Of a stretch of DNA of 50,873 bases, positions 1-39,848 are shown one piece after another; position 1 is the stretch's first letter, and every line of letters starts with the position of its first letter. The notes below the pieces were generated by a model. That model saw only the letters and a program-made list of their open reading frames with translations. It did not search any database and was not told where the DNA came from. Origin of the DNA: Perkinsus chesapeaki ATCC PRA-425 (taxonomy: Eukaryota; Protista; Perkinsozoa); contig JAAPAO010000224.1 of NCBI GenBank assembly GCA_013115145.1, positions 1-50,873 on the forward strand, in the 5' to 3' direction. The translations under genes and the position numbers were made by a program.

Positions 1-19
1 GTAGCCATCTTGGCTCAAG
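1..19 (+). other. Spliced-leader (SL) sequence, genomic relic; 5' end cut by window edge
   Basis: GTAGCCATCTTGGCTCAAG equals the 3' 19 nt of the Perkinsus SL ACCGTAGCCATCTTGGCTCAAG. It is followed by TTC, not a GT donor. Confidence 0.85.
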
Positions 20-11839: not shown

Positions 11840-13400
11840 ACCGAGGGCTCCTCTCTCGAATCCGCTGGAGCCTATAACCATGCCTATCAGCAGGGAGCGC
11901 GCTACGCACTTCACAACCAACCTCAGATCCTCTGTCACCCGGCTGCTTGAACCCAGCTGCTGAGGCTGCTCGTCTGAGCTCTAACAACAGTCCAACAGGT
12001 AAATTAAGTGTAAGCCACGTCTCTTGTGAGATATCCAAAATGTTGGACGGCGAATCCAAAAGGTTCTCTCGCATGATGGTCAGAATCTACGTCTATCCAA
12101 AATATATTTGTCTTTTCTGACACCTCTAGCTACCTTTTGAATTTCTGCATCGCTGCGTCCTCTTTTCCGTAGTGATTCCCTTGCGTGGAAGATAACTTGA
12201 AAACCAGCATCGTTATTGAGAGCCATTAAACCGCATAAATGACAAAAGTCCAACTTAATGAATACGGCCTATTATAATGCTGCTGTCGAACACGAAGAGT
12301 ATTTGTGTTTTCAAGAAATTGGCTAATACGAACTAGTATGGTCGGAATGTGCTCCCTCCTTGAGGATAGTATTGCTGAGATTGAGGATGATACCTGCAAT
12401 AATGCAAATCGATCATGCAATCGATTTTTCGATCAAGCAATAAAGTCGGCATAAATATCCCTTGAAGGTTATCGCATGTCGTTGTCCATTTGCTAGCCAG
12501 GCCAAACAAAATGAATCCCTTCTCCCACCAATTTATCAACTTCTCGCTGGGACATATTGGCCACAATTTCAGAGTTGAGGCAAAGCAATATTTCGACAAT
12601 CGAAACATTTCATTCAGGATACGTTAAATACAGAAGTACTAAACGAATGGTCGTAATAGTATATCATCCCACCCTGGAGGGCCTCCATAAACCGGCCTTG
12701 GCTGCTGCTGTTGTTGTTGATCGTATCCACTGCCATACCTACTGCTGCTGCTTGTTGACCCCATACTGTACCGTCTACCATCCACCGTCCCAACACCACC
12801 AGTGTACCTATTCAAGGGAAATGGCGTACCAACTTCTCATACCATTTAGCATTAATCTTCAACGCTCGATTCCTCATATGATTTATATTCTCATCGCCAT
12901 CACGTATCTTTACTCACCCGAAAGATTCTGCGGGATAAGGCATGCCAGGATACTCCTGTTGCTGATGTTGGTGATGTGATTGTTGCATATAGCCAAAACT
13001 CGCATAATTGTTTGGACCAGACGGGGGCGGCCGCGGTGCTTCAAACCGGAGCCCTTCTCCTCCGCATCCAGGGACATAGTTGTACTCAACCGACCTCATC
13101 ATGTATCTTTCACCCTTCGAGCTTGGATACCCAGCCATTACTCTACTCGGCATCGGCTGAGCATCAAGAGGCATCTGATTCACCGGGCTCGGCATTTCCC
13201 GGTGGTGTTCTCCTCCGAAGTATCGTCCGCCTTTACCGCCGCCGCCGCTTGTTCGCGCATACGGTCCACTAGCGTACTGAGAGCCACCTTTTCTACCTGA
13301 TAATACAGATTAACGCGAAATCGATCACTTGATCGATTATCTATCATAGAACCTTTATACACCTTCAACGAATACAAAGTGTACTCTCTGTCCGAAGTCC
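11840..13400 (-). CDS. Hypothetical multi-exon protein (boundaries approximate)
   Basis: Coding-like fragments (VEKVALSTLVDRMREQAAAA; PMAGYPSSKGERYMMRS) separated by GT..AG segments; no family recognised. Confidence 0.35.
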
Positions 13401-13699: not shown

Positions 13700-16100
13700 G
13701 ATAATGAGCTCTTCCGTCTACTAGTATCATTGGCCTGCGGTACTCCAATGGAATCGAGATAAGCTGCCAATTTGAAACAAGCATCATTTTGGGAATCCTA
13801 CATCAGATACGAAAAGATATCAAAACCTAAGCGGAGCGAAGCTCACTTTTTTGCAATTTTGCCAGTCCGAAACGAATTCCTTGCCCAATTGGGGGACTGT
13901 CACCGACGACTGCCACAACCCAACTTCATCCTCGGGCCGAACTCCAGGGCCGCTCTGGGACTCCGCGTTTTTTTCTGATGATGATGATCCTTCTGGACTT
14001 TCCTCTTCTTCTTCCTGAACATTAAAAGGCTAATCTTCCTTTGATTATCTTTAGCATCGGTACAGGTGTTCATGCCAGGTAGAGCGGAGTTGTGGAAGAA
14101 GAGGAATATCTTACTTTGCTGCAAACATGTTTCCATTCCATTACAGTAGCCCCTGCTTTATGCAGACTCTGTCCAAAATATCTCTGCAATCGTATATGCG
14201 CACTCTGTAGGATATTTGCGTTCGGGTCGCCACCTAGCCGGAATATCGATCCCCACCAACAAAAATAAAAGCTCTTCGTTTATCTTCCAGCAAGACGCAA
14301 TTTCATCAATTTTCTATACAAAACATTTCTACTTAACTTTTTTGCCTCTGTCGGAGAAAATTTCCAAAACCCGGGAAAATCGACAAAATTTTCCCGACCA
14401 TCTAATCCCGTTTACCATGTCTCGCGATCAAATCTCCAACATCGAGCTTCAACGTCTCGATGACGTTCCTTGCCGCCTCTCGCTGAGATATTTTTTTCAT
14501 GGGATGCCAGCATCCCATAAATTTCATCACCCGTGGAGGAGACTCTTCTTCCGGTGCGTCCAACCGGAAGGAGACCGTCGCTCGGTGCTGAACACCGAAA
14601 CCGATCTTCGTCTGTCTTCCCTATTCGACGACCATCAACAATTACCTCTAAACGCTCACCACCAGAGCCCACCATCCTCGACTCGTACTCCCACTGGAAC
14701 AGGCCGACCCCGGGAGCAGTATTACGATTTGTTACTCTTTGTACTGCCCTGAAAGCCACTTGCAGCTTTAATATCTTTCTTCGGGAAATTCTTTTCCCGA
14801 AGATTTGCCTTCTGACGGCTACCGCCTGCTTTTGTCAGAAATTTCACTGGATTCTCCCCGAGAGTAATCTCTCACGGAGCAGACAGAATGACGGAAAAAT
14901 CACCCCGCTAAGCTCCATTAAAGTCACTTTAATCCCATCACCGTCCTCATCAAATTTGACCCAACAAATATCCCAAATTTCAATCAAATTTTCAAATCAA
15001 TCAATATCAAATTTTACCGGAAAACCTCAGAAGGATCTCCGCCAACCCCCTGATGAACTTAATCCATATTACTCTTGCAGCACAGCCACCCAAGAGACAT
15101 GTGAATCGCCCATCTGCCTCAACGTATATGGCACAACTTCAAACTTGCTTAAACTTTCCAGGATGCCGGGATCGATCCGAGGACCTCTCTCTTCATGAAC
15201 TGCCTCCTTAACCTCCCCACCACTCGGTCTACGTTTCTCTTCTCCCCTTCTAGCTGCCTCCTGCCGTCGACGCTCCCATTCCTGAACGTACGAATATCAC
15301 CAAATCGACAAGCTGGACGAGCGATATCGAACCCATCTCCTCCACACCTCTGTGGTCAGTGCCGGCTCCAGTTTACCGTCGGTGGCCGCCTCTGATTGGC
15401 AATTATTTGAAGGCTGAAAAATAAGAAAAAAAACGATAAGTTTTAATACAAAAAAGAACAAAAGTTTATCAACGAAATATGGTAGAAAGTTCCCCGTCAT
15501 TAAGAAAACAAAAAATGACACTTTTATCCCCAAAAAGTTAGGCTCTACTCGACCAGAGACCATTAAACTATTTCAACTCCCCTTTGCCTCAAATTACTCA
15601 TTGGTTCAGCAAGAATGGTACGAAAAGTAGTAATTGCGTTCTATGAACGGCAATAAGGATGAATCCAGTGAATTCGTTGAGCCGCCTCCTGCTGCTGCCA
15701 GTCCATTTTCCATCACATATTTCATCAGTAATAACTACTACTACGATTTACTACCGAAAATAGCCGATCCCATAATAAAAAACCGTCCACCATTGCCCTC
15801 TACTACCTTCCCGTCTCCTTCTTCATCACCATCCAATCCAATCTCCTTTCTAACAGCCTCCATAACATGCTTCGGCAAACACAAGGCATCCCAGATATCT
15901 GGTGTAGTTGCTGCAAACGATGCGACATTGTCAAAGTAATTCTCCTCTAGAATCCGGTTAACCTGAAAAATAAGCTTATTCTTGTCATATCAGAGCAGGA
16001 CACTTTTCTGGGGAAGAGAGTGAGTGTTATACAATGATTTTTTATCGTAAAAAGTTCTAACCACGAAATTTCCGACCGATCCCAGAAGGCTTCATGGCCG
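13700..16100 (-). CDS. Hypothetical multi-exon protein, possible SAM-like helical segment (boundaries approximate)
   Basis: Exon-like fragments ILEENYFDNVASFAATTPDIWDALCLPKHVMEAVRKEI, QEWERRRQEAARRGEEKRR and basic FRKKKRKVQK. Confidence 0.35.
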
Positions 16101-16510: not shown

Positions 16511-17769
16511 TCAGCGATCCAACTTCAAACTATCTCTTACCTGATCAAGATTCACTACCCAAATATATCATTGCCGAACACTAAATGAAGAATGTATCAT
16601 ATATATATTAACCTCTCCAACAGTATATAATAAAGTATTTCCTGTATTATTCCTCCAGTATGAAAAACTAAATCGTAATTTAACTCATGATACAGCTTTT
16701 ACAGTATATAAGATAATTCTTTCATTAATTATTACACATTCATTTCGTAAATGATCATCATCATCACATAGCCCCTTCCCCTTTCATCATCCAACTATTA
16801 CCTCCATTATAATCTTTCCAAGGTTATTCCTGCCTTTTCCACTCCGCAAAGATACCCCCCAAAAATTATCATTCCAACTATTCCCTTCAACCAATTCTCG
16901 TTCACCTGTAGCCTTCAATTTATCCCTCAATTCCTCGGACCCTTGTGTGAATTTTGCCTCGATAACTTCCCGCATCACATCAACTCTTATAGCGTCCCAC
17001 CCTGCCCTCAAAGGGCCAACCCGTCTTCCCCAGGCTTTAGCCTGACAGAAAGGGGAAAAGTAGAAATTCAAAACAGTAGGAATGTTTTGTATACCAGCTC
17101 AGACTTTAGCCGCGACATTGCAAGAACAACCATTATTGGTCTAAGACATCATCATCATCATCACCCTTTTACAGTTAAGCATATCCTATTGGCTAGTAGT
17201 TCGAATATGCCCCTATTACTTCAACCAACTTTACTAATCACAACAACAACACACCCTTCACGAATATTTATTATATTATTTTCAACGCAATGATAGTGTT
17301 GAAATTTCCCTAATTCCCTAATTTAATTTCCTATCAGGATAGCAATCACATAACGCAATAACTGAGGAATGCAAATATGCAATATTACACTTGCCGCTCT
17401 TCAAATCATTTATCGAGAATCATTCGGAGATGTTGCCAAGATACCACACCGCTGCTGCCTTGGAACCATAAAACGCTTGCCCCGTCAGTCTCCCAGGCGA
17501 GCCCCCCTTCCCCGTATACTATTACCGATGCTGGAGTGTCGCATGTTTTAACCATCCTTTTTCGTTCTTCAATATCGAGAATTTTCTGAGCTTGGAAAGC
17601 ATGCTCACCAGTTGGGTATAAAATACCTGCTCGACTGCAGTAATTTCGCGGCGTGTGACGCAATACTCCTACCGTCTTTCATTTTGACTGGATATGGACT
17701 GAAGTTTGATAGAAAATAAAACTCTCCACGGAAAGTTGTGATTGCGTCTGATGAAGCTCGGGGAATCAT
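16511..17769 (-). CDS. NADAR / YbiA-family protein, 4 exons
   Basis: Spliced product ITTFRGEFYFLSNFSPYPV..|GILYPTGEHAFQAQK..PAS|AKAWGR..KFTQ..LVEGNSWNDNFWGV..GKGRNNLGKIIME|VRDSL carries the NADAR motifs. Start codon provisional. Confidence 0.9.
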
Positions 17770-17793
17770 CGGAAAAACGATGAGCAAGTTGAG

Positions 17794-17839
17794 CTATTCT
17801 GTATTTTGCACTCTCAACCTCAGGAATCCTTAACTAAAC
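17794..17839 (-). repeat. Dispersed intron-like element, copy A (46 nt, GT..AG)
   Basis: gtttagttaaggattcctgaggttgagagtgcaaaatacagaatag; 40/46 identical to copy B. Confidence 0.75.
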
Positions 17840-18253
17840 ACCAATTTAATTTAGTCCACTCTTGGAGGAAAATTGGAAATCTCCAACCAATACAAACGAG
17901 CTGTCTTTCACGAGGAGTCATTTCCAATATCATCATCTCTTGGCATACTATCTCATAGAAGTGTAGGTTCTGTAAGGGAGCAAGTTCAACGACCGGCATA
18001 CGCAAAGTCGGTTGGCGCGCGCCTCGGCGGTCGACGAGGTTGACTAGCCTCGAGGTTGCCATAAGTACAAGACAGCGGTACGGGCGTCTTGTCGAATGGG
18101 GTGCCTGAAATCGGTGGCCTCCGGTCACTGTCGGGCTGACTATGCCTGTGTTTTGGGCTCACTACGTGTATTTTTTTTTTTGAAGTATATATGTGCAGGG
18201 GCCCTCGCTCAATGTTGTATGGTGTATGGTCTCAGACATCTGCATCATTTGCT

Positions 18254-18294
18254 GGTATGTAAGGTGGTGGGCCACCACTGGTGGCTTACATACC
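18254..18294. repeat. 41-bp hairpin with perfect 10-bp terminal inverted repeats
   Basis: GGTATGTAAG-gtggtgggccaccactggtgg-CTTACATACC. Confidence 0.85.
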
Positions 18295-18466
18295 TTTAGC
18301 AGATAGACCATTCACTCACAACGGTTGAGGGCGACAGGGAGCTGCCTCCGTTTACAAGGATTCCGGCAGCTACCCTGCCAACCACCCAAACCGCTGCACA
18401 AATATATATATACATGGTATGAGTTTGACGTTAGAAGGGAGTTGACCGAAAGATACACGACTCGAC

Positions 18467-18512
18467 CTATTCTGTATCTTGCACGCTCAACCTCAAGATA
18501 CCCTAACTAAAC
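18467..18512 (-). repeat. Dispersed intron-like element, copy B (46 nt, GT..AG)
   Basis: gtttagttagggtatcttgaggttgagcgtgcaagatacagaatag, with internal 8-bp inverted repeat GTATCTTG/CAAGATAC. Confidence 0.75.
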
Positions 18513-18569
18513 GCATTATTAGCTTTGAAATCTGCTAGCAATATAATTAACAGTACTTCCTTTACTATC

Positions 18570-21500
18570 TTACCAGCTCTTCGCATGGTAGATAGTAAAG
18601 GTAGGTGTGAACCCTCCAGTAAGCGTTGACCTTCTCATCGAAGGTAGACTATTAATCTTTATTTCCTCCGACCCTCCTATCTCAACATCACCATCGTCAC
18701 ATCTCGGTCTTGTCGGATCACTAAGATTCTCTACATCCAAATCAATAGGAAATATCCTATCAATAAGCCTCGAGAAAGCTCCTCTCTTTTCCTTCGGCAA
18801 TACCGGATAATATAAAGCCATACATACAGCCAAGTGAATCACACACAACGGTATGAGCGATAATGGATGGGCCTCGCTGACCAGCTCCACACAAACGTTA
18901 AAGATGGACCAGAACGCTACAAATACAAAAAACACAATCCTTCTACCCACAGTTGACGTTTTCTCAACGGCTCTCGCTCCAGTAAGGATAATAAATATAT
19001 AAAGTGGCATTCTAGTGAAGGCTAATAGAACTTGTGGAAGGAAACATATTAAGGCCCAAAGGGGACCCCAGAAGATGGCATCCGGAGCAATGAAACATAC
19101 TGCTAGGTTTATATAGACCGTTGATAATAGAATAACCTAAAAGGAGAAAATTAGTGAAAGTAGTTAAAATAAAAAATGATATAATACGCTAAAATAACTA
19201 AATACACTGTAATATACTATATAGTATTCAATAATAGTATATAATATATAGTATATACCTTTATACTACTATTAATAATATACACTATGAGGACCTTTAT
19301 AATACAGTCCTCCAAACTAACTTAGAATATCACGTTTTTGTGACTATTCTCTGCCAGATTTGCGACTCTATGCCCAAAACTCAGAGAGCCTCGTTCTAAC
19401 ATAGCCTTCAATATACCACCGAAGTTTCAGCGCCTAACACTCACTGGTTATTGAGAACTGAGGAATCGGCACGGAAAAGTTGCCAAATTGACTTAGAATA
19501 CACACCTTAATTTTGGTCCAAAAATCACGATTTTTCTTAAGGAAGTACCTCGAGATAGAACAGTTCGATTATAACTCTCGTAGTACTTGAAACCTATCAT
19601 ATACGGTGCTCACCCCTTAAAGTTTCATTGAGCAGTCGGAAGTAGTTGAGGATAATACTAATAATATACACTATAAGGACCTTTATAAAACTATTAATAA
19701 TATACACTATAAGAAGCTTTATAATACTATCAATAATAGTCTATTAATAGTATACACTATAAGGGCCCTTCCCATACTATTGTTCATACCGTTCCCTTAT
19801 TATTACGTATTTAAATGGTATGGTACCCCTACGGATCCCCAATGCCTGTCTAGCTTCCCTTCCAACATCTGTTCTAACAATCCTTTCAAATGCCAGTAAA
19901 TCACCGTCATACATATCTGATATATTCTGCATCACATACCTAATAACAACAACAAATCGTCACTGCGCCACAAAAATAAACACTTACTCTCGATCACTCT
20001 CTACTGTACACTTTGTGTTGTCCATTTCAAAAGTTTTGATTTGATTTACCAGCGCGTCTGAGTCTTGAACGTATCTCAACGCAAATGGACATAACACTGC
20101 CGCGAGTAGCAACCCTTCTGGTATGGCACAGATAAATCTAGCTTTAAGACTGGCACTGAATGACCCGACGAATGCCTGAACAAAAACGCGCTAAGGAATG
20201 GGACACTTTCAGGGGAGGGAGGTCGAAGCGGATATCAACAGTCCATATTATTAGATAGACCTTACGTATACGATTATTATTACATAACCCCAAGAAGACT
20301 AACGAGGCCTTCACAATTTGAAGCGAAAACACAAAAAGAAAGGACTTAGTAAATCTGTGCGAACCAAGTACCAATAAAGATATGCATCAAGGTAGAATAT
20401 ATGATATACAACAAAGCATTGATCATGTTGGTAATTTAGACGTTCACAGGTGGTGAAGCATAAGTCTAAATGTTACTCGGTATACAGGTTGATATGTGGA
20501 TAATTATAGCCCTTATTGTTATTACCACTTCAACGCTTAATAAAACGTTGCCAAAGAATCCCACCAATGTAAAGGCAAATACGAATTTAAGTAATGGTAG
20601 AGAAACAAATTGAACTTTATCAGTCCAATTGCTACCAAACATGAACCTAATAATACACAGATAAATAACACATCATTCATACACTAACGTTAGTAGCACG
20701 AAATCCTAGAAGGCAGTAAAGTCTTTGAAGGCCGTCCAGCTTGATGGTTTCCGGCAAAGCTCCCCATCTCATCGACGGGTATGAATTAGTTAGATTTCAA
20801 ACTAACGGAGATGCAGAAATCACGGACATTTCCCAACCAACCCCTCCACCACCGCCTGGTAATGAGTCAAGTGATTACTTCCTCCTTTCCCCGTCCCTTT
20901 TATTACTCTCGTATTCCTTTTGCAATCCTACAAAACTGCTCTCCGCAAGCATTAGATGAGACTTGGCTTTCAGCAGCAGCAACACGTCTGCCGACTGCTT
21001 TTTTATAGCTCATGAATGCAGCCAACTCATAGACGCACCAAAGACGCTCAAAATAGCAATTGGACCACATAACAATCATTGAGGATGACCGAGACAAGCA
21101 TGAACCAAGGGAACGGATGCCAACCTCCTTCATTACAGGCTAATCAAAATATACAATCAATAATTATAGAACTGATGATATCATCATTCAACTCTGGCTT
21201 ATATTTCAAGTGATATATGATGTTAGGGGCGGCGCCTCTATCATAACAAATAACTAACAACATGACTTCCCTTTATAGTATACATTCCATTATACTTGCT
21301 AATCGTTCCTCTTTGCTTTAACCACCCCTTTACCTCATAATGCTATCTATCCAACCCTTATTACATCATCCTGTGGTATACAACAATTATCCACAAATAG
21401 TTTATAACTGCTCCTGGCTAACTGGACATTTGGTAATAGAAGTATGATTACAAATACACCAGTACCTACCAATAACCACCAGCAGAATAAGATACTTCAT

Positions 21501-22688
21501 AACATTCTATTTCTAATAACACTGATAATAATAATAAGAAAAGCACGACGGTCTTGTGTGTTTTTAATGCAGAAAGAAGCGGTTGAAAAACTTCTATTAC
21601 TTAGCCAATTTTTGTTATAAAGTACTAAAATTCATCTGCATTTTCACACAGGAGTTTTCCATATAGCAAATCAGTAAAGTGTGATTCTGTTAGTAACTTA
21701 TTTCTCCACGTTACTTGGATACCGCACCAATGCCCAGGAGGTATCCCTCGAATGTAAGTATGATGATAACTAATGTCATTTAAGAGCATAATACTCTACT
21801 ATAATACAATGACTACCTCCTCCCATTATTACTAATACAAGCTAATAAATGAGCAGTTGGTATGTTATCTTCATCATATACACTTTGGTAATAATAAACA
21901 TACAAAACTATCAATACTTCAATTATTGCTGTTAATATAGCCAACCAAGATGCTCTTTGATAATTAAATATATAGCACAATGACAGGACTCTGAAAAAAG
22001 GGAAATCCTGCAATCTCAACAGAACATCTTTGAATCAACATGGCTCAATCGCCTAACCATCGCCAAATGCTCCTACACACGCAATACACAAGATTTACCA
22101 AGTTTAATAGCGTCGGTCATAAAGTAAGTTTACGGCAAGCGCAAGGGTGAGAGTGCATCCAACTATTCCTCCTATAGTTCACTACCGCCGAATTAGCCCC
22201 CCCAGCTCGTAGTTATAAACCTACACTGGTGAACATGATCATATTAATAACGTATACAATGTGATGCCCAGTAACCCTCTTATTATTATTACTTCTCCCA
22301 CCATGGAGCACTCCACGAATGGCTGACAAAAAAGTCTAGATGGGCGACATTAACGGAATTGGAGTATCCCTTCCGTATCGAGTGGGCGGCATCACCACCT
22401 TGATTAAAGGGGTTTCCTAAACCAGGATTTGAACCCGAGTCGTCTGCATTAAAGCCCACCTATCCATCTCATTAGTCTGTTGGCAGGTACCCCTCTCAGT
22501 GCTAAACTCCAGGAATCGTCCCCGTCAGCCAGCTCAACAGCAGCAGCAGCACCCGATCCCTCTATACCAGATGGTACCGTCATTTCTGATACCATTATTT
22601 TCCGAGTTCCCAAGCGACCCAAATTACCTTCGCCATTTGCGTTTTCCGGTTCTCCTTTTTCTGGTACTTCAATCACATTCGCTGCCAT
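18570..22688 (-). CDS. Multi-pass membrane protein with split TIR/HET-like domain, many exons
   Basis: LDFFVSHSWSAPWWEK|VLSLCYIFN, then hydrophobic helices, LFVDNCCIPQDD, GIRSLGSCLSRSSSMIVMWSNCYFERLWCVYELAAF, then further hydrophobic exons. Confidence 0.75.
19269..19770 (+). repeat. AT-rich ~36-bp minisatellite (4 copies) interrupted by a ~350-bp insert, intronic
   Basis: Unit ctattaataatatacactataaggacctttataata at about 19269, 19658, 19691 and 19741. Confidence 0.8.
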
Positions 22689-22984
22689 ATGACAGGCAAA
22701 TCAGAGTCGCATCAACTGCAAACCCAAAGGTCCCCGGTTCGACCCCCACTCCCGTTGATTTAACCATCACTTTTACCAAACAACGACCAGAGCTCTCAAG
22801 TCAACACCTCAATGTCGTACATGACCCACCAACGTTGCGGAAATGCAAGATCCGCAAGAAGAGCAAGATTTTATAAATATGCCACAAAGGCGAAATATGT
22901 AGAAATATTACAGAACAGAAATTTGGCAAAAAGAAACATAAACGGCAAGATCGAAGGATAGTTTTGTGGCGCGTGAGAACGCAG

Positions 22985-25900
22985 TCAAAAAAGAAGTCCG
23001 TCGGCTTTGGGTGCTACATCACGGTTGAACTGCATCAGACAACCGAACAGAGAATCGCTGACAGAAAGGAAAAGCCTCGTAGAATCTGGGCTGAACCCTA
23101 GGCCCGCAACGTTGCCAAAGATATCGATCACCTGATCGATTTCATCTCATTACGCTACACTATTATTATATTACCTGTTCGCTCGTAAAGTTAGACTCGG
23201 TATCCACAACATGTACTAAATCCGCTGGCTCAGCAAATGCAAGAAATCTGCATGAAAATTCCCGACCACCTATCCCTTCTTCCCAATCCAAGTGGTATTA
23301 CTTTCCATCCTTTGAGAAATGACACGTCCTTACCGCTCCAAGGACTGTCCCCAAGGAGCAAAGAGGCGCATCCGACTTTAGATTACGAATATCCCATACA
23401 CGACAGGTACCATCCTAAAGGACGAAGAAGATGACGAATCAACCTGTTGGGTATCTTGCTAGCGAAGAGCTTTGGTATTGGAGCGGCCATCCGTAAAATA
23501 ATTCAAAACGGTTGAGGAAGATCCTAAGCTCAGTTTAAGTCTCGGACACTAAACGAGCTTGAGCCTCCAGTCCTCCTCCCTACTACCTGATTTCCTGTAG
23601 CAAGCATATTACCATCAGGATGCCATGTAGAGCAGAATCCATAATCCAAATGCCCTTTCAATACCAATGCCTTCTGTAATCTAGACCAATCCCTTCTATC
23701 AGATAATACAACAGCTCTATCATCTCCAGAGGCACATAGTATATGAGAGTCACGAGGATTAACCGATACATGGTTTACAGACCATGAATACCTGACCCAT
23801 TTTATCAACACTCCACCAACCCCGACCTATTTCCTGCATTCTACTGCCAGAGTTGTACCTCTCTTTCAAAAAAATTTTAGATTTTTTCACCAAGTTCCCC
23901 TTCCCTGGTCATAGAAATTTCTTTGCCTTCTTGTTAGAGCAGCGATGTCCCACCACGCTCCTCCTCCCTCTTACGTAGCCTCCGAAACAATCGCTCCGCC
24001 ATGTGTGACATCGACATCCCGAAGAATCTTGTCATTGTTAGCCACAACAAGGTGAAGAGGATCACACCCCATTCGATGGAATTCCTGTTCCTCGTTAAAT
24101 TGTGAAGAAAACTGACACAAAATGCCCATCGAACGAATCGAACCAGATACCAACCGATGGACAGACGTGCCCCACACCCTTACGTTATTTGGGAACCTCC
24201 TCAAGCAATGATCTTCAAAAATACTGCCTTCCAGTCCCATCCTAGGAAAACTGCCCCTCCTTCTCCTCCTGCTGCTGTTGTAGCTATCTTCATCCTCGTA
24301 AGGTGTCATAAACGCATCCCCGAATTCGCTGCAACTTTCACCAGTCTCGCTCGAGTTCGAATGATACGCCTCCGTCATACTACCCATAATCCGCCTGACA
24401 TCATCCGTCACTGCGCCACAAAATTACTCAATCTCACCGTTTAGGAGGCTTCTCGTTTTCTGGTACACGTGGCGAAAGATATCCATTCGTTGGAAGTATC
24501 AATGAGTAGTTTGTTATATTATTGGTAGCTACACTCATCCTGGAATTCAATACCTGATAATAATAGTTATTATTATAACCAAGGATATAAGATGGCTCAT
24601 TACAACAACAACACCAAGTCTTGGAAAATTCTACTACTTCTGCTACTACAAATCCGATTGAAAGATGATTTAAATTATAGGACACACCATCATTTGCCGA
24701 ATCATGGGGTTACGCATGTTCCCCGGACAACATTATCTAATTAAATGGGGTTACGCATGTTCCCCGGACAACATTATCTAATTAAACGGGAAAGTGAGCC
24801 CTAAAAGGGCCATCATTTCTATCAAGGGAACCACCACCACCTGACCCCTGACTATTTTGCCCTATTACTCGAAGCCTCAGTAGGGTAACATAGGTTCAAA
24901 ACTCTACAGCTGCCGATATGTTCTAGTGGGCCGTTAAAAATGCACTAAATGCGTTGAAAAAAAGTTATGAAAAGTTAAAGCGCTGAGAAAAAGAGGAAGT
25001 CCTAAATCCTCAGTCTTGAAGCTAACAACATGTATCCTATCCACAGATTAAAGCGCAATGATAACAGCCCCACCATGGTTCGAACCCGCGTCCATCCTAT
25101 ACCCTAATACCTCATGTGCATCGTGGGTCCTTGTGACTATGACAGTGGAATCAAAGCCACCTGAGACAGCGAATCCCCGATTGACATCGATGCTTGATAA
25201 TGTGTGAACAGGTTGTGAATGCATTGTGGTTGCCTGGCCAGTGAGAGTATCAAATTTATACAAGGTCGAGGAGCAAACAACATAAACAGTATCTGAGGAG
25301 GGGAACTAGATATTCCGGTCAATGGTGAGCTGGTACTGTTAGAAGTGGGTACGGTGAGATGACGGAGCTGGAAGTGATCAACGGTAGGATTGAGCCTCCA
25401 AGTTGGCGGGTCTCCGCGATAGCTGCGGGAAAATCGATAGTAGCACAGGTTAACGCGTTCCATCTGACAATTGAATCAACGTGTTTTATATCTTGCATGC
25501 TCAACCTAAAGATACCTCATTGAGCGCGTCTTTTCGTTTCTTCTCTAAGCTATCATTCCAAGCAACATTATTATAATTGGAAAAATCCTGCACTCTCCGT
25601 TGACGATATTCATGTCGGTTTATCGAGAACCTGCACGCATGTACATCGAACTTGGCCTATTTTGTATCTTTACTACCGTTCCCAGGGTATCCCTTGCGGA
25701 TCCGTTTCGGCTGTGTCGGTCTCAGCCGTCCTCGAGGCCCACTGCACCTCAGCTCCGGTAATGTCCCTTTCCGGTGCGGATGTTTGTGCCATCATCGGTC
25801 GAAGTGATGTCAATAAACTCCGACTTGATTGGATCGAACTCTCCTCTGTTACCCACACACGGCTCCGTGGAATCGGCAATGGGGCATCCCGCTCCACTAT

Positions 25901-26499
25901 AGGCTCCTCCTCGGATTCGATCGACCCGAACTCACTACCGTATTCGCTGGAATCGTCGTCGCTTGGAAACCATTCGCAGCAGCTGACCTCCTCGGCGCTT
26001 TCAAATTCGCTCCATTGTGGGTCCCACGCTTCGGCCCATTTGCCCGTGTCAGTAGGCATCCGTGTGTCCTCCACATCCATACCGTCTTCTTCTATAATGG
26101 CGTCCTCCAAACACGCTGCTGCGACATTGTTGGTCCCTTCTACCGGCCATGAGGAGATATCGTCCTCTTCGACCAAAGGCGCTCGGAGGATCACCTTCAC
26201 GCGTTTGCTGTGTCGGCGAGCTCCTAAAGGCTGGTCACAGAGGCCTAGTTTCGGCCCGCTGTAGCTCGACTCTGATCTGGTTTCGGAAGAGACTCTGGTT
26301 GATGATGATTCATGTGATGCATCGCTTAGGACCATAACAGCATATACGACAGGTCCGACACAGACAAGCCACAACTGAAAGCAAGTGCATCATCTGACGT
26401 ATTTTGTATCTTGCACCCTCGACCCTAAGATATCTCTAGTTAAACCTTTTTAGACCCTAGTCTTCCCTGAGACGGCAGCCATATTCCTCGAGACATCAT
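22985..26499 (-). CDS. WD40-repeat protein, DUF2415-type, multi-exon; start provisional
   Basis: VDHFQLRHL, LVVANNDKILRDVDV, WSVNHVSV, GHLDYGFCSTWHPDGNMLATGNQ|DGTCRVWDIRNL, FLAFAEPADLVHV, VIDIFGNVAGLGFSPDS follow the family motif order. Confidence 0.85.
24704..24785 (+). repeat. Exact 41-bp tandem duplication
   Basis: atggggttacgcatgttccccggacaacattatctaattaa x2. Confidence 0.95.
25464..25515 (-). repeat. Intron carrying the dispersed element, copy D (52 nt)
   Basis: GAG|gtatctttaggttgagcatgcaagatataaaacacg..gtcag|ATG; removal joins KKRKDALNE to MERVNL in frame. Confidence 0.75.
26394..26445 (-). repeat. Intron-like dispersed element, copy C
   Basis: AAG|gtttaactagagatatcttagggtcgagggtgcaagatacaaaatacgtcag; a downstream AG (71-nt intron) gives an in-frame join. 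Confidence 0.7.
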
Positions 26500-26882
26500 T
26501 CGAAATCTAGCAAGCGCGTCTCGGTGTTTTACAGAGTTTCACATCGAGTCTTCCAGAGGAGTAGAGGTGGGGGGAAAGCTTAATCGAAGTTCACGCAAGT
26601 TCAAGGCACGTTCAACTGTTCGTAGATACTCCAGTACTAGATCCGTCGCCGATTAGTTTGGCGCGCGCCACGAAATTCCCAAAGCCACGAGACGAGAAGG
26701 CTAATTGGAATGTTTAGGAGCGTCGCTCGAGAGCCAAGAAGAGTGTGGCGGGTCCGAAGGTACCTTAGGTTAATGAATGCATGCTACTCAAGAGGTCGAG
26801 CTAGTGCGTGTTATTTTACAATCGATCAACTTGAGAATTAGCTACCTTCCCCTATAGTTATATTGTATACTCCTCTTCTTCC

Positions 26883-28097
26883 ATGTCTGATAGCGCTTAC
26901 AACTTTTTCTTCTCTGCCCCCAAGGTAGAGCTGCACATCCACTTTGATGGAGCCTTCGACATGGACCTCCTCTACGAGATTGCTAAGCGTGATCTCGATC
27001 AGCTCCCGGAGACCGTCCCCGCCCCCTGGAACGGCCCCGATGCTACCATTGCCGTCCGCTCTGCTATCGCCGCTTGTAAGAACAAAGAGGACTTTAAGAA
27101 GATAACTTGTCTCGGCCCTGAAGCTGTGGTCTCCAAGCGTTTGCAAACTGGCCAGAAGGGCGCTGGTCTAGCCTGTATGCTTGATTGTTTCGCTATCTTA
27201 ACTCCTGTCGTACAAGGCAAGCGGGACGTCATGGAGGAGATGGCCTTCAAGGTCTGTGAACGTCAGTATCGTGAAAACGTTGTTTACACTGAACTTCGAT
27301 ACAACCCCCATGTGTTAGCTCTCGAGGGTTCTACTCTTCCCGATGCTAGAAGTGTCGTTGAGGCCGTTACTGCTGGTATCGAGCGTGGCAAGAAGGTATT
27401 CGGTATCGATATGAATCAGATCCTATGCTGCATGAATTTGATGCCAGAAGTAAGTGCTGAAGTTGCTCAGCTCGCCATCGAGTTCAAGTCCAAGGGCGTT
27501 GTTGCTATTGATGTCGCTGCTGGCGAGAACCATTTCGAAAATGAAGACCTGAAAAAGGCACACGTTGCCGCTTGCTTGGAGGCTGAGAAGGCCGGTCTGC
27601 GAGTCACTGTACATGGTGCTGAAGACGGTTCTTCAAAGAATTTCTGTTGTGCTGTTCGCGAGTATCACGCCGAGCGTGTTGGTCACGCCTACAAGATCGC
27701 GTCTGACCCGGAGATGTATAAAATGGCTCAAGAGACTCATACCCACATCGAAGCCTGTCCTACTTCTAGCATTTGCACTGAGGCAGTCTGCCTTCCACAG
27801 ATCCATCCTGAGAAGCCTATCCTCGATAGTTTGGATTGGAATAAGCATCCTATTAAGAAGTTTATTGAAGACGGTTTGAGTGTTAGTATCAGTACCGACG
27901 ACCCGACCGTATTTTTAACTCACATCACTGACGAGCTCACAATCCTGGCTGACCGTTTCGGATTTGATGCTCACGAAGTTGGTATGCAAGTGACGATGAA
28001 CGCCATTGACAGGTGCTGGGCGACCGATAAGGAAAAGTCGAAGTATCGCGAGGCGGCCGTCGCTTATTATAAAGGTGCGGAGTCGACCCGCCAGTAG
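26883..28097 (+). CDS. ADA: Adenosine deaminase, copy 1, intronless
   Basis: VELHIHFDG, YTELRYNP, TVHGAE, RVGHA, EACPTSS, STDDP; full metal and catalytic residue set. Confidence 0.93.
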   Translation: MSDSAYNFFFSAPKVELHIHFDGAFDMDLLYEIAKRDLDQLPETVPAPWNGPDATIAVRSAIAACKNKEDFKKITCLGPEAVVSKRLQTGQKGAGLACMLDCFAILTPVVQGKRDVMEEMAFKVCERQYRENVVYTELRYNPHVLALEGSTLPDARSVVEAVTAGIERGKKVFGIDMNQILCCMNLMPEVSAEVAQLAIEFKSKGVVAIDVAAGENHFENEDLKKAHVAACLEAEKAGLRVTVHGAEDGSSKNFCCAVREYHAERVGHAYKIASDPEMYKMAQETHTHIEACPTSSICTEAVCLPQIHPEKPILDSLDWNKHPIKKFIEDGLSVSISTDDPTVFLTHITDELTILADRFGFDAHEVGMQVTMNAIDRCWATDKEKSKYREAAVAYYKGAESTRQ

Positions 28098-39720: not shown

Positions 39721-39848
39721 CCATCATGCTCAACATGTTTAGACGTTATTATGTGCGCTGCCTCATGGCTGCTGCTGTGACTTCTGTTGTTTAATGTGTT
39801 TTTTACTGAGTGACCAATTCCGACCTCGAAAAGTATCTTTGCTAGGTT

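Follow-up and report, generated by a model that had tools for sequence, protein, structure and literature searches.

Introner elements are known in Micromonas, Aureococcus and dinoflagellates, and Perkinsus is the dinoflagellates' sister lineage, with dense tiny introns and spliced-leader trans-splicing. Pairing of the donor with the branch region of yeast introns was reportedly described by Goguel and Rosbash in 1993, by Libri et al. in 1995 and by Charpentier and Rosbash in 1996, and the Ur element of C. elegans is said to have been described by Lasda, Allen and Blumenthal in 2010. The Ur element and the trypanosomatid signals direct spliced-leader addition, coupled to 3′-end formation of the upstream gene. 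Within the relatives of Perkinsus, introners are known in Amoebophrya, where they carry inverted and direct repeats (PMC7789003).

The window analyzed here is the whole 50,873-nt stretch of Perkinsus chesapeaki DNA, for which the original prediction proposed four homologous, intron-sized elements of an introner/MITE-like family: A (17794-17839), B (18467-18512), C (26394-26445) and D (25464-25515). Our analysis points, with a probability of roughly 0.55, to an old, dispersed, strand-specific Perkinsus cassette that is predicted to have a branch-site/acceptor role in RNA, in tiny introns as well as in spliced-leader/5′UTR splicing, and that is not an active intron-generating transposon.

The four copies are mutually homologous, each being recovered by nhmmer with an HMM built from the four at an E-value of 2e-13 to 2e-16, and all of them lie on the minus strand at the predicted positions and read GT..AG. 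The 40/46 identity of A and B is likewise borne out. In the sense orientation the cassette spans ~47 nt and is made up of a fixed 28-nt unit and the tail RRAAYAG-GTC, with the unit composed of GTATCTT, a 14-nt loop holding an AGGTTGA core, and AAGATAC. The 5′ limit of homology in A, B and C lies 12 nt upstream of the limit in D, so the GT claimed for each copy falls at unequal element positions among the four. Searched with a covariance model, 136 kb of sequence from three Perkinsus species yields 18 strong copies (E 4e-13 to 4e-6), and the unit is 28 nt long in 13 of the 18 and 27-29 nt long in all of them. Against shuffled sequence, the 26-nt core pattern occurs at 3 sites in the window and at none in 100 shuffles, and the GTATCTT/AAGATAC 7-mers are four-fold over expectation (27 versus 7.0 ± 2.3). 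A search of the window with the four-copy HMM returns, beyond A–D, only two half-copies above noise (25650-25670 and 23436-23459); membership nevertheless exceeds four copies, as a fifth 28-nt unit is present at 13130-13103 in addition to the half-copies. All copies analyzed here fall in one syntenic cluster comprising the TIR, NADAR, HAD-like, WD40 and ADA genes. Contig L007 has no cassette copy, the integrase genes in L004 and L006, within the ~160 kb of Perkinsus DNA covered, show no connection with the cassette, and two metagenome scans using the element patterns gave 0 matches. No paper describing the cassette was found.

Copy A (17785-17845, minus strand; nhmmer E 6e-15; covariance model 47 bits) has its unit at 17828-17801, with a degenerate stem as originally noted, and its tail, AGAATAG, reaches to 17794, with the NADAR start codon (17769) following 24 nt downstream. 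Between this tail and the ATG there is no AG except the tail's own. A reading of A as an intron joining an upstream 112-aa ORF to NADAR was rejected, as the frames are incompatible and the ORF is not conserved. Copy B (18458-18518, minus strand; nhmmer; covariance model 62 bits) has its unit at 18501-18474, with the perfect stem originally reported (GTATCTTG/CAAGATAC, 8 bp), and starts ~60 nt past the stop codon (18573-18571) of a TIR/transmembrane gene; tblastn found no conserved ORF between B and A. As for the surrounding genes, a NADAR exon search returned two distant Logan proteins only, representatives of the TIR family are mostly from dinoflagellates and not Perkinsus, and the ORF at 1328-2071, used as a query, gave no match.

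Copy C (26390-26450, minus strand), which is recovered by nhmmer and covered by the WD40 alignment, has its unit at 26433-26406, beginning with AT rather than GT. It is located in a divergent intergenic region upstream of the WD40 gene, with a conserved pyrimidine-rich CAG, a candidate acceptor, nearby at 26387-26375. While C was originally taken as the probable first WD40 intron, the conserved WD40 ATG (26335) lies downstream of it, and C is not a coding intron. The assignment of copy D (25464-25515, minus strand) as an in-frame WD40 intron is correct: removal of the 52-nt coding intron (25515-25464) puts the WD40 sequence back in frame, and three species share its exon junction. The unit of D (25515-25488) opens with the intron's own GT, and its tail lies 18 nt before the 3′ splice site.

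Less complete copies are present as well. In WD40 intron E (25631-25676, minus strand) the cassette is represented by its 3′ half alone (GTAGTA-AAGATACAAAATAGGCCAAG; covariance model E 0.0095), and the intron's sequence is not conserved in the sister species (three-way identity 0.10). A 3′-half copy (GCAAGATACCCAACAGGTTG; 23435-23462, minus strand) sits close to the 3′ end of a longer WD40 intron, the P. olseni counterpart of which has a 5′-half copy at its 5′ end (L001:7100-7137). The fifth 28-nt unit (13103-13130, minus strand) has a divergent core (GTATCCAAGCTCGAAGGGTGAAAGATAC), opens a HAD-like gene intron, and is matched by degenerate counterparts in P. olseni and P. marinus. At 14588-14645 (minus strand), a HAD-like gene intron contains a decayed element, and the orthologous introns hold intact copies (P. 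marinus L003:7203-7249, P. olseni L005:18225-18271). On the plus strand, a weak, decayed copy (26756-26802; E 4.6) lies ~85 nt upstream of the adenosine deaminase (ADA) start codon (26883); this copy is intact in both P. marinus paralogues (L004:6124-6170 and L003:9900-9946; E 1.7e-9 and 4.2e-9). Coding introns are limited to D and a few other copies (I, K and J); none of A, B, C or the ADA-upstream copies is one.

Occupancy of the same sites in related species, which the original prediction itself regarded as evidence against its proposal, is what we observe. With conserved exons, stop codons and start codons as position anchors, same-position counterparts of all four copies are present in P. 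olseni, and those of C and D are present in P. marinus too, where the comparison covers C and D and contig L004 ends inside the TIR gene, before the orthologues of A and B. The P. olseni orthologue of A (L005:15122-15169) lies upstream of NADAR with its stem intact, and that of B (L005:13266-13313) lies ~80 nt past the TIR gene stop. Copy C corresponds to L001:9569-9615 in P. olseni and to L004:5770-5815 plus the paralogous L003:9711-9757 in P. marinus, and copy D is found in the same intron in both species (P. olseni L001:8667-8713; P. marinus L004:4832-4878). In a three-way WD40 alignment, the element windows have an exon-like identity of 0.47-0.60, versus 0-0.27 for other intron and intergenic windows, and ordinary neighbouring introns are unalignable between species. 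The copies scatter around a single consensus and do not cluster by species. Judged by this conservation, the alignments show purifying selection on the cassette, which P. chesapeaki, P. olseni and P. marinus all retain at the same sites. Presence at the same sites in sister species, together with selection, argues for an old cis-element and not a recently mobile introner.

The introner/MITE-like reading put forward originally, in which a transposable element is still creating introns, can be divided on this evidence into a part that stands and a part that does not. There is indeed a sequence family with an internal inverted repeat, which fills unrelated tiny introns, D among them, and bears a donor GT, and it is true that inverted-repeat introners exist in the related Amoebophrya (PMC7789003). 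Present mobility, however, does not hold up, as the copies show exon-level conservation and each of those in the window has an orthologous position in sister species whose neutral DNA is saturated. In addition, three of the four copies are not coding introns, and target-site duplications, which the original prediction suggested looking for, were not found. The 5′ flanks vary (GGGT, GAGT, GCGT and AAGT) and the AGGT on the 3′ side belongs to the conserved element sequence, so these flanks do not amount to a duplication. The inverted repeat bounds the inner 28 nt of the 47-nt conserved cassette and is thus not terminal, no near-identical young subfamily was found, and introns differing in element content exist in both species with no intron gain seen. 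We consider continued creation of introns highly improbable, and conclude that the cassette is not a currently active intron-generating transposon; its ancient origin may have been by transposition.

Some similarities within species would fit an introner. P. chesapeaki A and B are 80% identical in the core and 90% identical in a 12-nt 5′ extension, versus 59% between P. chesapeaki A and its P. olseni orthologue. A P. olseni intron copy (L005:21962-21988) is near-identical to another one 3.7 kb away, and the orthologous P. chesapeaki intron (10901-10853) has no recognisable copy. Such similarities are, however, also compatible with short-range gene conversion. The 12-nt extension (GTTTAGTTAGGG-like) is common to A, B and C in P. 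chesapeaki and absent from their P. olseni and P. marinus orthologues, and P. olseni B and C share another, different extension. The shared P. chesapeaki extension and the P. olseni near-duplicate give hints of slow spread, and the within-species homogenisation of P. chesapeaki A, B and C hints at occasional copying. It is possible, if distinctly unlikely, that the cassette is a portable branch-site/acceptor module that spreads slowly by ectopic conversion or by insertion into segments that are already removed. Such a module could seed acceptors or introns, and would be a domesticated, selection-maintained relative of introners. Alternatively, the extensions particular to each species could follow a trans-acting RNA that is itself species-specific, for example the spliced-leader RNA intron.

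The orientation of the copies and their spacing from splice sites bear directly on function. Every copy is sense to its host or downstream gene, at no fewer than nine (>= 9) independent loci, and the copies upstream of the plus-strand ADA gene, themselves on the plus strand, are included in this. Among the intron copies, seven in number, 11-22 nt separate the tail from the 3′ splice site and the donor distance is 0, 3 or 17 nt, and in coding introns the cassette GT can serve as the donor. All 11 upstream copies are sense, and the tail AG is retained in 10 of them. At copy C, a pyrimidine-rich CAG follows the tail by 21-24 nt in all three species, and at the ADA copies a Y-rich CAG is located 38-61 nt downstream of the tail. 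The cassette is not the branch signal of introns in general, as most window introns are without it. The U12-type intron consensus combines an RTATCCTT donor with a TCCTTAAC branch site, and assignment of the cassette to this class was rejected, as its GTATCTT is one base short of the donor consensus and no copy has a TCCTTAAC-like branch site.

A role in splicing is the most likely one for the cassette, as far as can be read from its sequence context. The cassette appears to occupy parts of the primary transcript whose removal is expected, namely tiny cis-introns (D) and regions just upstream of start codons or between closely spaced genes of the same direction (A, B and C, and the copies upstream of ADA). 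There, it would act in RNA as a branch-site/acceptor-proximal splicing signal, and the upstream copies would mark either spliced-leader trans-splice acceptors or 5′UTR-intron acceptors. The stem may fix the geometry of the signal by placing the donor beside an A-rich branch region, or it may mask the donor. The fallback offered in the original prediction, that A and B may be UTR introns or cis-elements, pointed in the right direction.

The unit ends can pair over 6-8 bp, and 82.6% of the stem cells are paired. The closing pair alternates between GC and AU across loci, and double changes are seen at two pairs (UA/AU and GC/AU/CG) with the inner pairs invariant. Covariation is surpassed in 6-12 of 500 shuffles (score 0.134 versus 0.087 in shuffles, 12 of 500), a level that is reachable by related sequences without structure. 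Among the stem mismatches, A.C (10) outnumber G.U (5), so a strand-specific wobble signal is lacking, and the hairpin energies are no better than those of shuffles (z -1.0 to +1.8). ARAGORN predicts 0 tRNA genes and no A/B-box or tRNA-derived structure was recognised; Rfam gives no match at gathering or E-value thresholds, with no snoRNA or other known RNA. These results bear on the proposal that the excised introns or outrons release a small functional RNA or contain a protein-binding hairpin, as a regulatory RNA or an intron-retention signal and not as a core splicing signal. Sense-only copies in segments that are likely removed would be expected of such an RNA, the AGGTTGA loop core is conserved beyond pairing needs, and a donor GT buried in the stem could restrain splicing of a 52-nt frame-breaking intron. 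Against this, the stem is short and weakly stable, no Rfam or tRNA family is matched, and at ~40 nt the element is smaller than known snoRNA or miRNA precursors. We regard the proposal as very unlikely.

The unremarkable hairpin thermodynamics and the lack of a G.U excess over A.C mismatches would also be expected if the cassette acted as DNA, as an orientation-dependent protein-binding site with inverted half-sites (TATCTT/AAGATA) 14 bp apart and an asymmetric core. Such a site would serve promoter-proximal regulation or chromatin, and its intronic copies would be tolerated. A fixed 28-bp length with palindromic arms is typical of dimeric DNA-binding sites, most copies here are ~25-140 nt upstream of start codons, a back-to-back pair occupies the divergent WD40/ADA intergenic region of P. 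marinus, and a single syntenic cluster holding all copies could mean co-regulation. However, all of the intronic copies (6-7 loci) are sense to their gene, which a DNA site in a gene body need not be, and the GT of the unit is used as a splice donor with the tail at a constant distance from the 3′ splice site. The conserved tail and its AG moreover fall outside the palindrome, and B follows closely on a stop codon and has no conserved gene right after it. We regard a DNA-level site as unlikely and favor the RNA-level splicing cassette.

The spliced leader of this genome (ACCGTAGCCATCTTGGCTCAAG; leader from PMC3101222) is confirmed by a relic at positions 1-19 of the window. For each of 12 copies, the energies of duplexes between the cassette and the spliced-leader RNA are no better than those of shuffles. 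When the copies are compared in sequence with the leader, in sense or antisense, or with the complement of the branch-binding region of U2, the median shuffle p is 0.2-0.55, and the U2 comparison serves as a lead only. The cassette has a short resemblance to the start of the P. marinus spliced-leader RNA intron (GTA.ATATC.AGGTC). P. chesapeaki and P. marinus reportedly have different versions of this intron (PMC3101222), and no P. chesapeaki spliced-leader RNA gene was found in the Perkinsus DNA examined.

If the splicing reading is true, a fixed-length, selected cassette in micro-introns and upstream of start codons would be a cis signal common to cis- and trans-splicing. It would also mean that homologous introns need not imply introner activity, which is relevant to surveys that call introners from sequence families alone. 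Should the occasional copying be real, it would bear on how splice signals and introns spread. For the P. marinus transfection system that is already available, the cassette offers a defined 47-nt target that can be mutated.

Compared with known systems, the cassette resembles introners in that both are repeated families with copies constituting entire short introns of unrelated genes, have an inverted repeat that could form a stem, can supply a splice site, and occur in the same broad lineage (Myzozoa). Unlike introners, it is found at orthologous sites in three species under purifying selection, has no target-site or direct repeats at its borders, uses canonical GT..AG splice sites, is much shorter (28 + ~19 nt) and of fixed length, and has most of its local copies upstream of start codons and not in coding introns. 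In yeast intron pairing, as in the stem proposed here, the neighbourhood of the 5′ splice site is joined to sequence just upstream of the branch region, which brings the reactive sites together. The yeast segments, however, are gene-specific, do not form a dispersed family, and shorten long introns, whereas the Perkinsus intron is already ~50 nt long and has the donor itself inside the stem. The candidate Perkinsus cassette differs from the Ur element in that it lacks significant pairing to the Perkinsus spliced leader and also fills cis-introns. It nevertheless shares with the Ur element and the trypanosomatid intergenic trans-splicing signals a short conserved element, a stem-loop (putative in the cassette) plus motif expected to act in RNA, located between co-directional genes or upstream of start codons, and copy B, as would suit an Ur-like signal, lies 60-80 nt past a stop codon in both species.

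The stretches A (17794-17839), B (18467-18512), C (26394-26445) and D (25464-25515) are minus-strand sequences that agree with the original prediction's transcription, including the 40/46 identity of A and B, the perfect GTATCTTG/CAAGATAC stem of B and the degenerate stem of A. In all, 17-18 copies from three Perkinsus species align readily, giving the consensus gAG-GTATCTT-n-AGGTTGAg-cgtg-c-AAGATAC-rgAAyAG-GTC for a sense-strand cassette of about 47 nt. Measured from GTATCTT through AAGATAC, the unit has a length of 28 nt in 13 of the 18 copies and stays within 27-29 nt throughout. Its ends are able to pair over 6-8 bp around an asymmetric loop, in which a conserved AGGTTGA adjoins the 5' arm and 4-6 bases are variable. 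Conservation also takes in the tail with its AG, beyond the palindrome.

Three sites in the window match a 26-nt core pattern (none in 100 shuffles), and an HMM built from A-D recovers each copy at E-values of 2e-13 to 2e-16, together with half-copies at 23436-23459 and 25650-25670, the latter in the adjacent WD40 intron, E. A scan for two arms at fixed spacing adds a fifth 28-nt unit at 13130-13103. The GTATCTT and AAGATAC 7-mers number 27, against 7.0 +/- 2.3 in shuffles, a four-fold excess that is due in part to lone AAGATAC half motifs. Such lone 3' halves with AGGT-type tails are seen at 39839, 45623 and 12910 (all minus), for example GCAAAGATACTTTTCGAGGTCGG at 39839 and an intron beginning GTGAGTAAAGATAC at 12910. 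Among the ~160 kb of Perkinsus DNA searched, all cassette copies fall within a syntenic TIR-NADAR-HAD-WD40-ADA block; HMM and covariance-model searches found none in the other ~37 kb of the window or in the flanks of the compared loci.

The minus strand of this block carries, in order of transcription, a WD40 gene (conserved ATG at 26335), a TIR-like/transmembrane gene (stop at 18573-18571), a NADAR gene (ATG at 17769) and a HAD-like gene (~16357 down to ~10700). The adenosine deaminase (ADA) gene, encoding 404 aa, is on the plus strand next to the WD40 gene and divergent from it, and its product is 89% identical to the P. olseni and P. marinus proteins. The window copies are mainly upstream of genes. 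A ends 24 nt 5' of the NADAR ATG, and B starts ~60 nt past the TIR stop, with no conserved ORF found in the interval from B to A. D, the only coding intron of the four, is a WD40 intron as predicted; it spans 52 nt (25515..25464), restores the reading frame and has a conserved exon junction. C had been taken as the first intron of the same gene; however, the conserved ATG is 3' of C, so C is not its first coding intron. Each of the five adjacent genes (TIR-like, NADAR, HAD-like phosphatase, WD40 and adenosine deaminase; window 16790-28097) has one or more cassette copies in at least one species. Several of them are tied to NAD, ADP-ribose or adenosine chemistry, and the block may be co-regulated.

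We used HMM and covariance-model searches to look for orthologous copies in the syntenic P. olseni contig (L001 and L005), the true syntenic P. marinus locus (L004) and a paralogous P. marinus ADA locus (L003). D occupies the identical WD40 intron in P. olseni (L001:8667-8713) and P. marinus (L004:4832-4878), and C keeps its upstream position in both (L001:9569-9615 and L004:5770-5815), with a paralogous copy at L003:9711-9757. B and A, compared in P. olseni only, have counterparts ~80 nt past the TIR stop (L005:13266-13313) and 5' of NADAR (L005:15122-15169). In both relatives a HAD-like-gene intron holds an intact element, which in the window (14645-14588) is decayed. Both P. marinus ADA paralogues have a plus-strand copy 55-85 nt 5' of the ATG, which is weak in P. 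olseni and in the window (26756-26802), and P. marinus has a copy in a fourth WD40 intron (L004:4405-4451). In 30-nt windows of the three-species WD40 alignment, C and D show a three-way identity of 0.47-0.60, as in exons, compared with 0-0.27 in other introns and intergenic flanks. The shared sites and exon-level identity indicate that the copies are older than the divergence of the three species and are under purifying selection, and we put the probability that the cassette is ancient and conserved at about 0.9.

The gene arrangement itself differs between species. The P. olseni WD40 and TIR genes are ~9 kb apart, as against ~500 nt in the window, and the intervening DNA (L005:862-10001) has neither called genes nor similarity to the window. 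P. marinus has two ADA loci, of which L004 (GG685288.1) keeps the TIR-WD40-ADA order. At L003 (GG682368.1), ADA and its two upstream cassettes directly adjoin the HAD-like gene and the NADAR-TIR-WD40 block is absent, the outcome of a segmental duplication or rearrangement with a breakpoint just downstream of a C-type cassette. The WD40 intron at ~25110-24555 (minus) is ~500 nt longer in the window than in either relative, and the extra DNA contains a 40-nt sequence duplicated exactly in tandem (24786-24747 and 24745-24706, minus) and a tRNA T-loop-like GGGTTCGAACC at 25087-25077 (minus).

The original prediction of a mobile, introner-like family survives in part: the sequence family does exist and is linked to introns, but present-day mobility finds no support. 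The four copies sit at the same positions in P. olseni, as do C and D in P. marinus, a pattern that the prediction had itself set against mobility. No target-site duplication is present, because the triplet preceding the unit is variable (GGG, GAG, GCG, AAG, GTA) and the AGGT past the tail belongs to the conserved element. The inverted repeat lies within the cassette, and the aligned copies scatter around a single consensus with no grouping by species and no young, near-identical subfamily. Occasional copying is nevertheless suggested by two cases. The P. chesapeaki A matches its neighbor B (core, 80%; a 12-nt 5' extension, 90%) more closely than its P. olseni orthologue (59%), and the extension is also present in C, whereas it is missing from the orthologues in P. 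olseni and P. marinus. This extension (17829-17840, 18502-18513 and 26434-26445, minus) is GTTTAGTTAGGG-like and resembles a TTTAGGG-type telomere repeat. In P. olseni, an intron (L005:21962-21988) contains a near-duplicate of a copy that lies 3.7 kb upstream within that gene, whereas no copy is recognizable in the orthologous intron of P. chesapeaki (10901-10853). Since the intron or site is common to both species in these cases, and no intron gain was seen at these loci, short-range gene conversion would be the simplest reading.

At no fewer than nine independent loci, every copy has the orientation of its host gene or of the gene downstream. The rule extends to the plus-strand copies 5' of the plus-strand ADA and points to a role at the RNA level or coupled to transcription. 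In 7/7 coding introns the tail precedes the 3' splice site by 11-22 nt. The donor distance is 0, 3 or 17 nt, and in D the donor is the unit's own GT. A long WD40 intron has the 3' half at 23436-23459 near its 3' end in P. chesapeaki and a 5' half near its 5' end in P. olseni. The tail AG is retained in 10 of the 11 upstream copies, and C is followed by a pyrimidine-rich CAG 21-24 nt past the tail in all three species, although in none of them does C carry GT at the unit's donor position. The putative acceptors upstream of WD40 and ADA are closely followed by a shared TTGT..CTGT(T) motif (window 26375-26340, minus; L004:6231-6250; L003:9984-10000), as in CAG|TTGTGGCTTGTCTG and CAG|TTGTTATCTGTTC, which may mark a common 5'UTR start. 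The sense orientation, splice geometry and upstream AG/CAG lead us to view the cassette as a branch-site/acceptor-proximal module in RNA that gets removed. Such a module would serve tiny cis-introns as well as outrons or 5'UTR introns preceding start codons, and B could link 3'-end formation at the TIR gene with the processing of downstream RNA. We consider this splicing mechanism, proposed from sequence features, slightly favored over even odds, and a binding site acting at the DNA level is a real rival to it.

A functional stem is plausible but not proven by the alignment. Paired cells make up 82.6% of the total, the closing pair varies between GC, AU and CG among loci, one inner pair changes from UA to AU, and the covariation score is beaten by only 12 of 500 shuffles. 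Against it, the remaining inner pairs are invariant and A.C mismatches (10) outnumber G.U (5); folding energies of the copies are no better than those of shuffles.

The cassette has no match in Rfam or in a tRNA search, and the literature searched on Perkinsus holds nothing on conserved intron or upstream cassettes, nor on introners. Spliced-leader trans-splicing does occur in Perkinsus (PMC3101222, PMC9399869). Window 1-19 (plus), GTAGCCATCTTGGCTCAAG, is a genomic spliced-leader relic that precedes an intronless ORF and is identical to the corresponding part of PmaSL1 (PMC3101222), which confirms the leader sequence for the P. chesapeaki genome. Introners with inverted repeats are known from the related Amoebophrya (PMC7789003); the Perkinsus cassette is best read as an old, selected, sense-strand splicing element.
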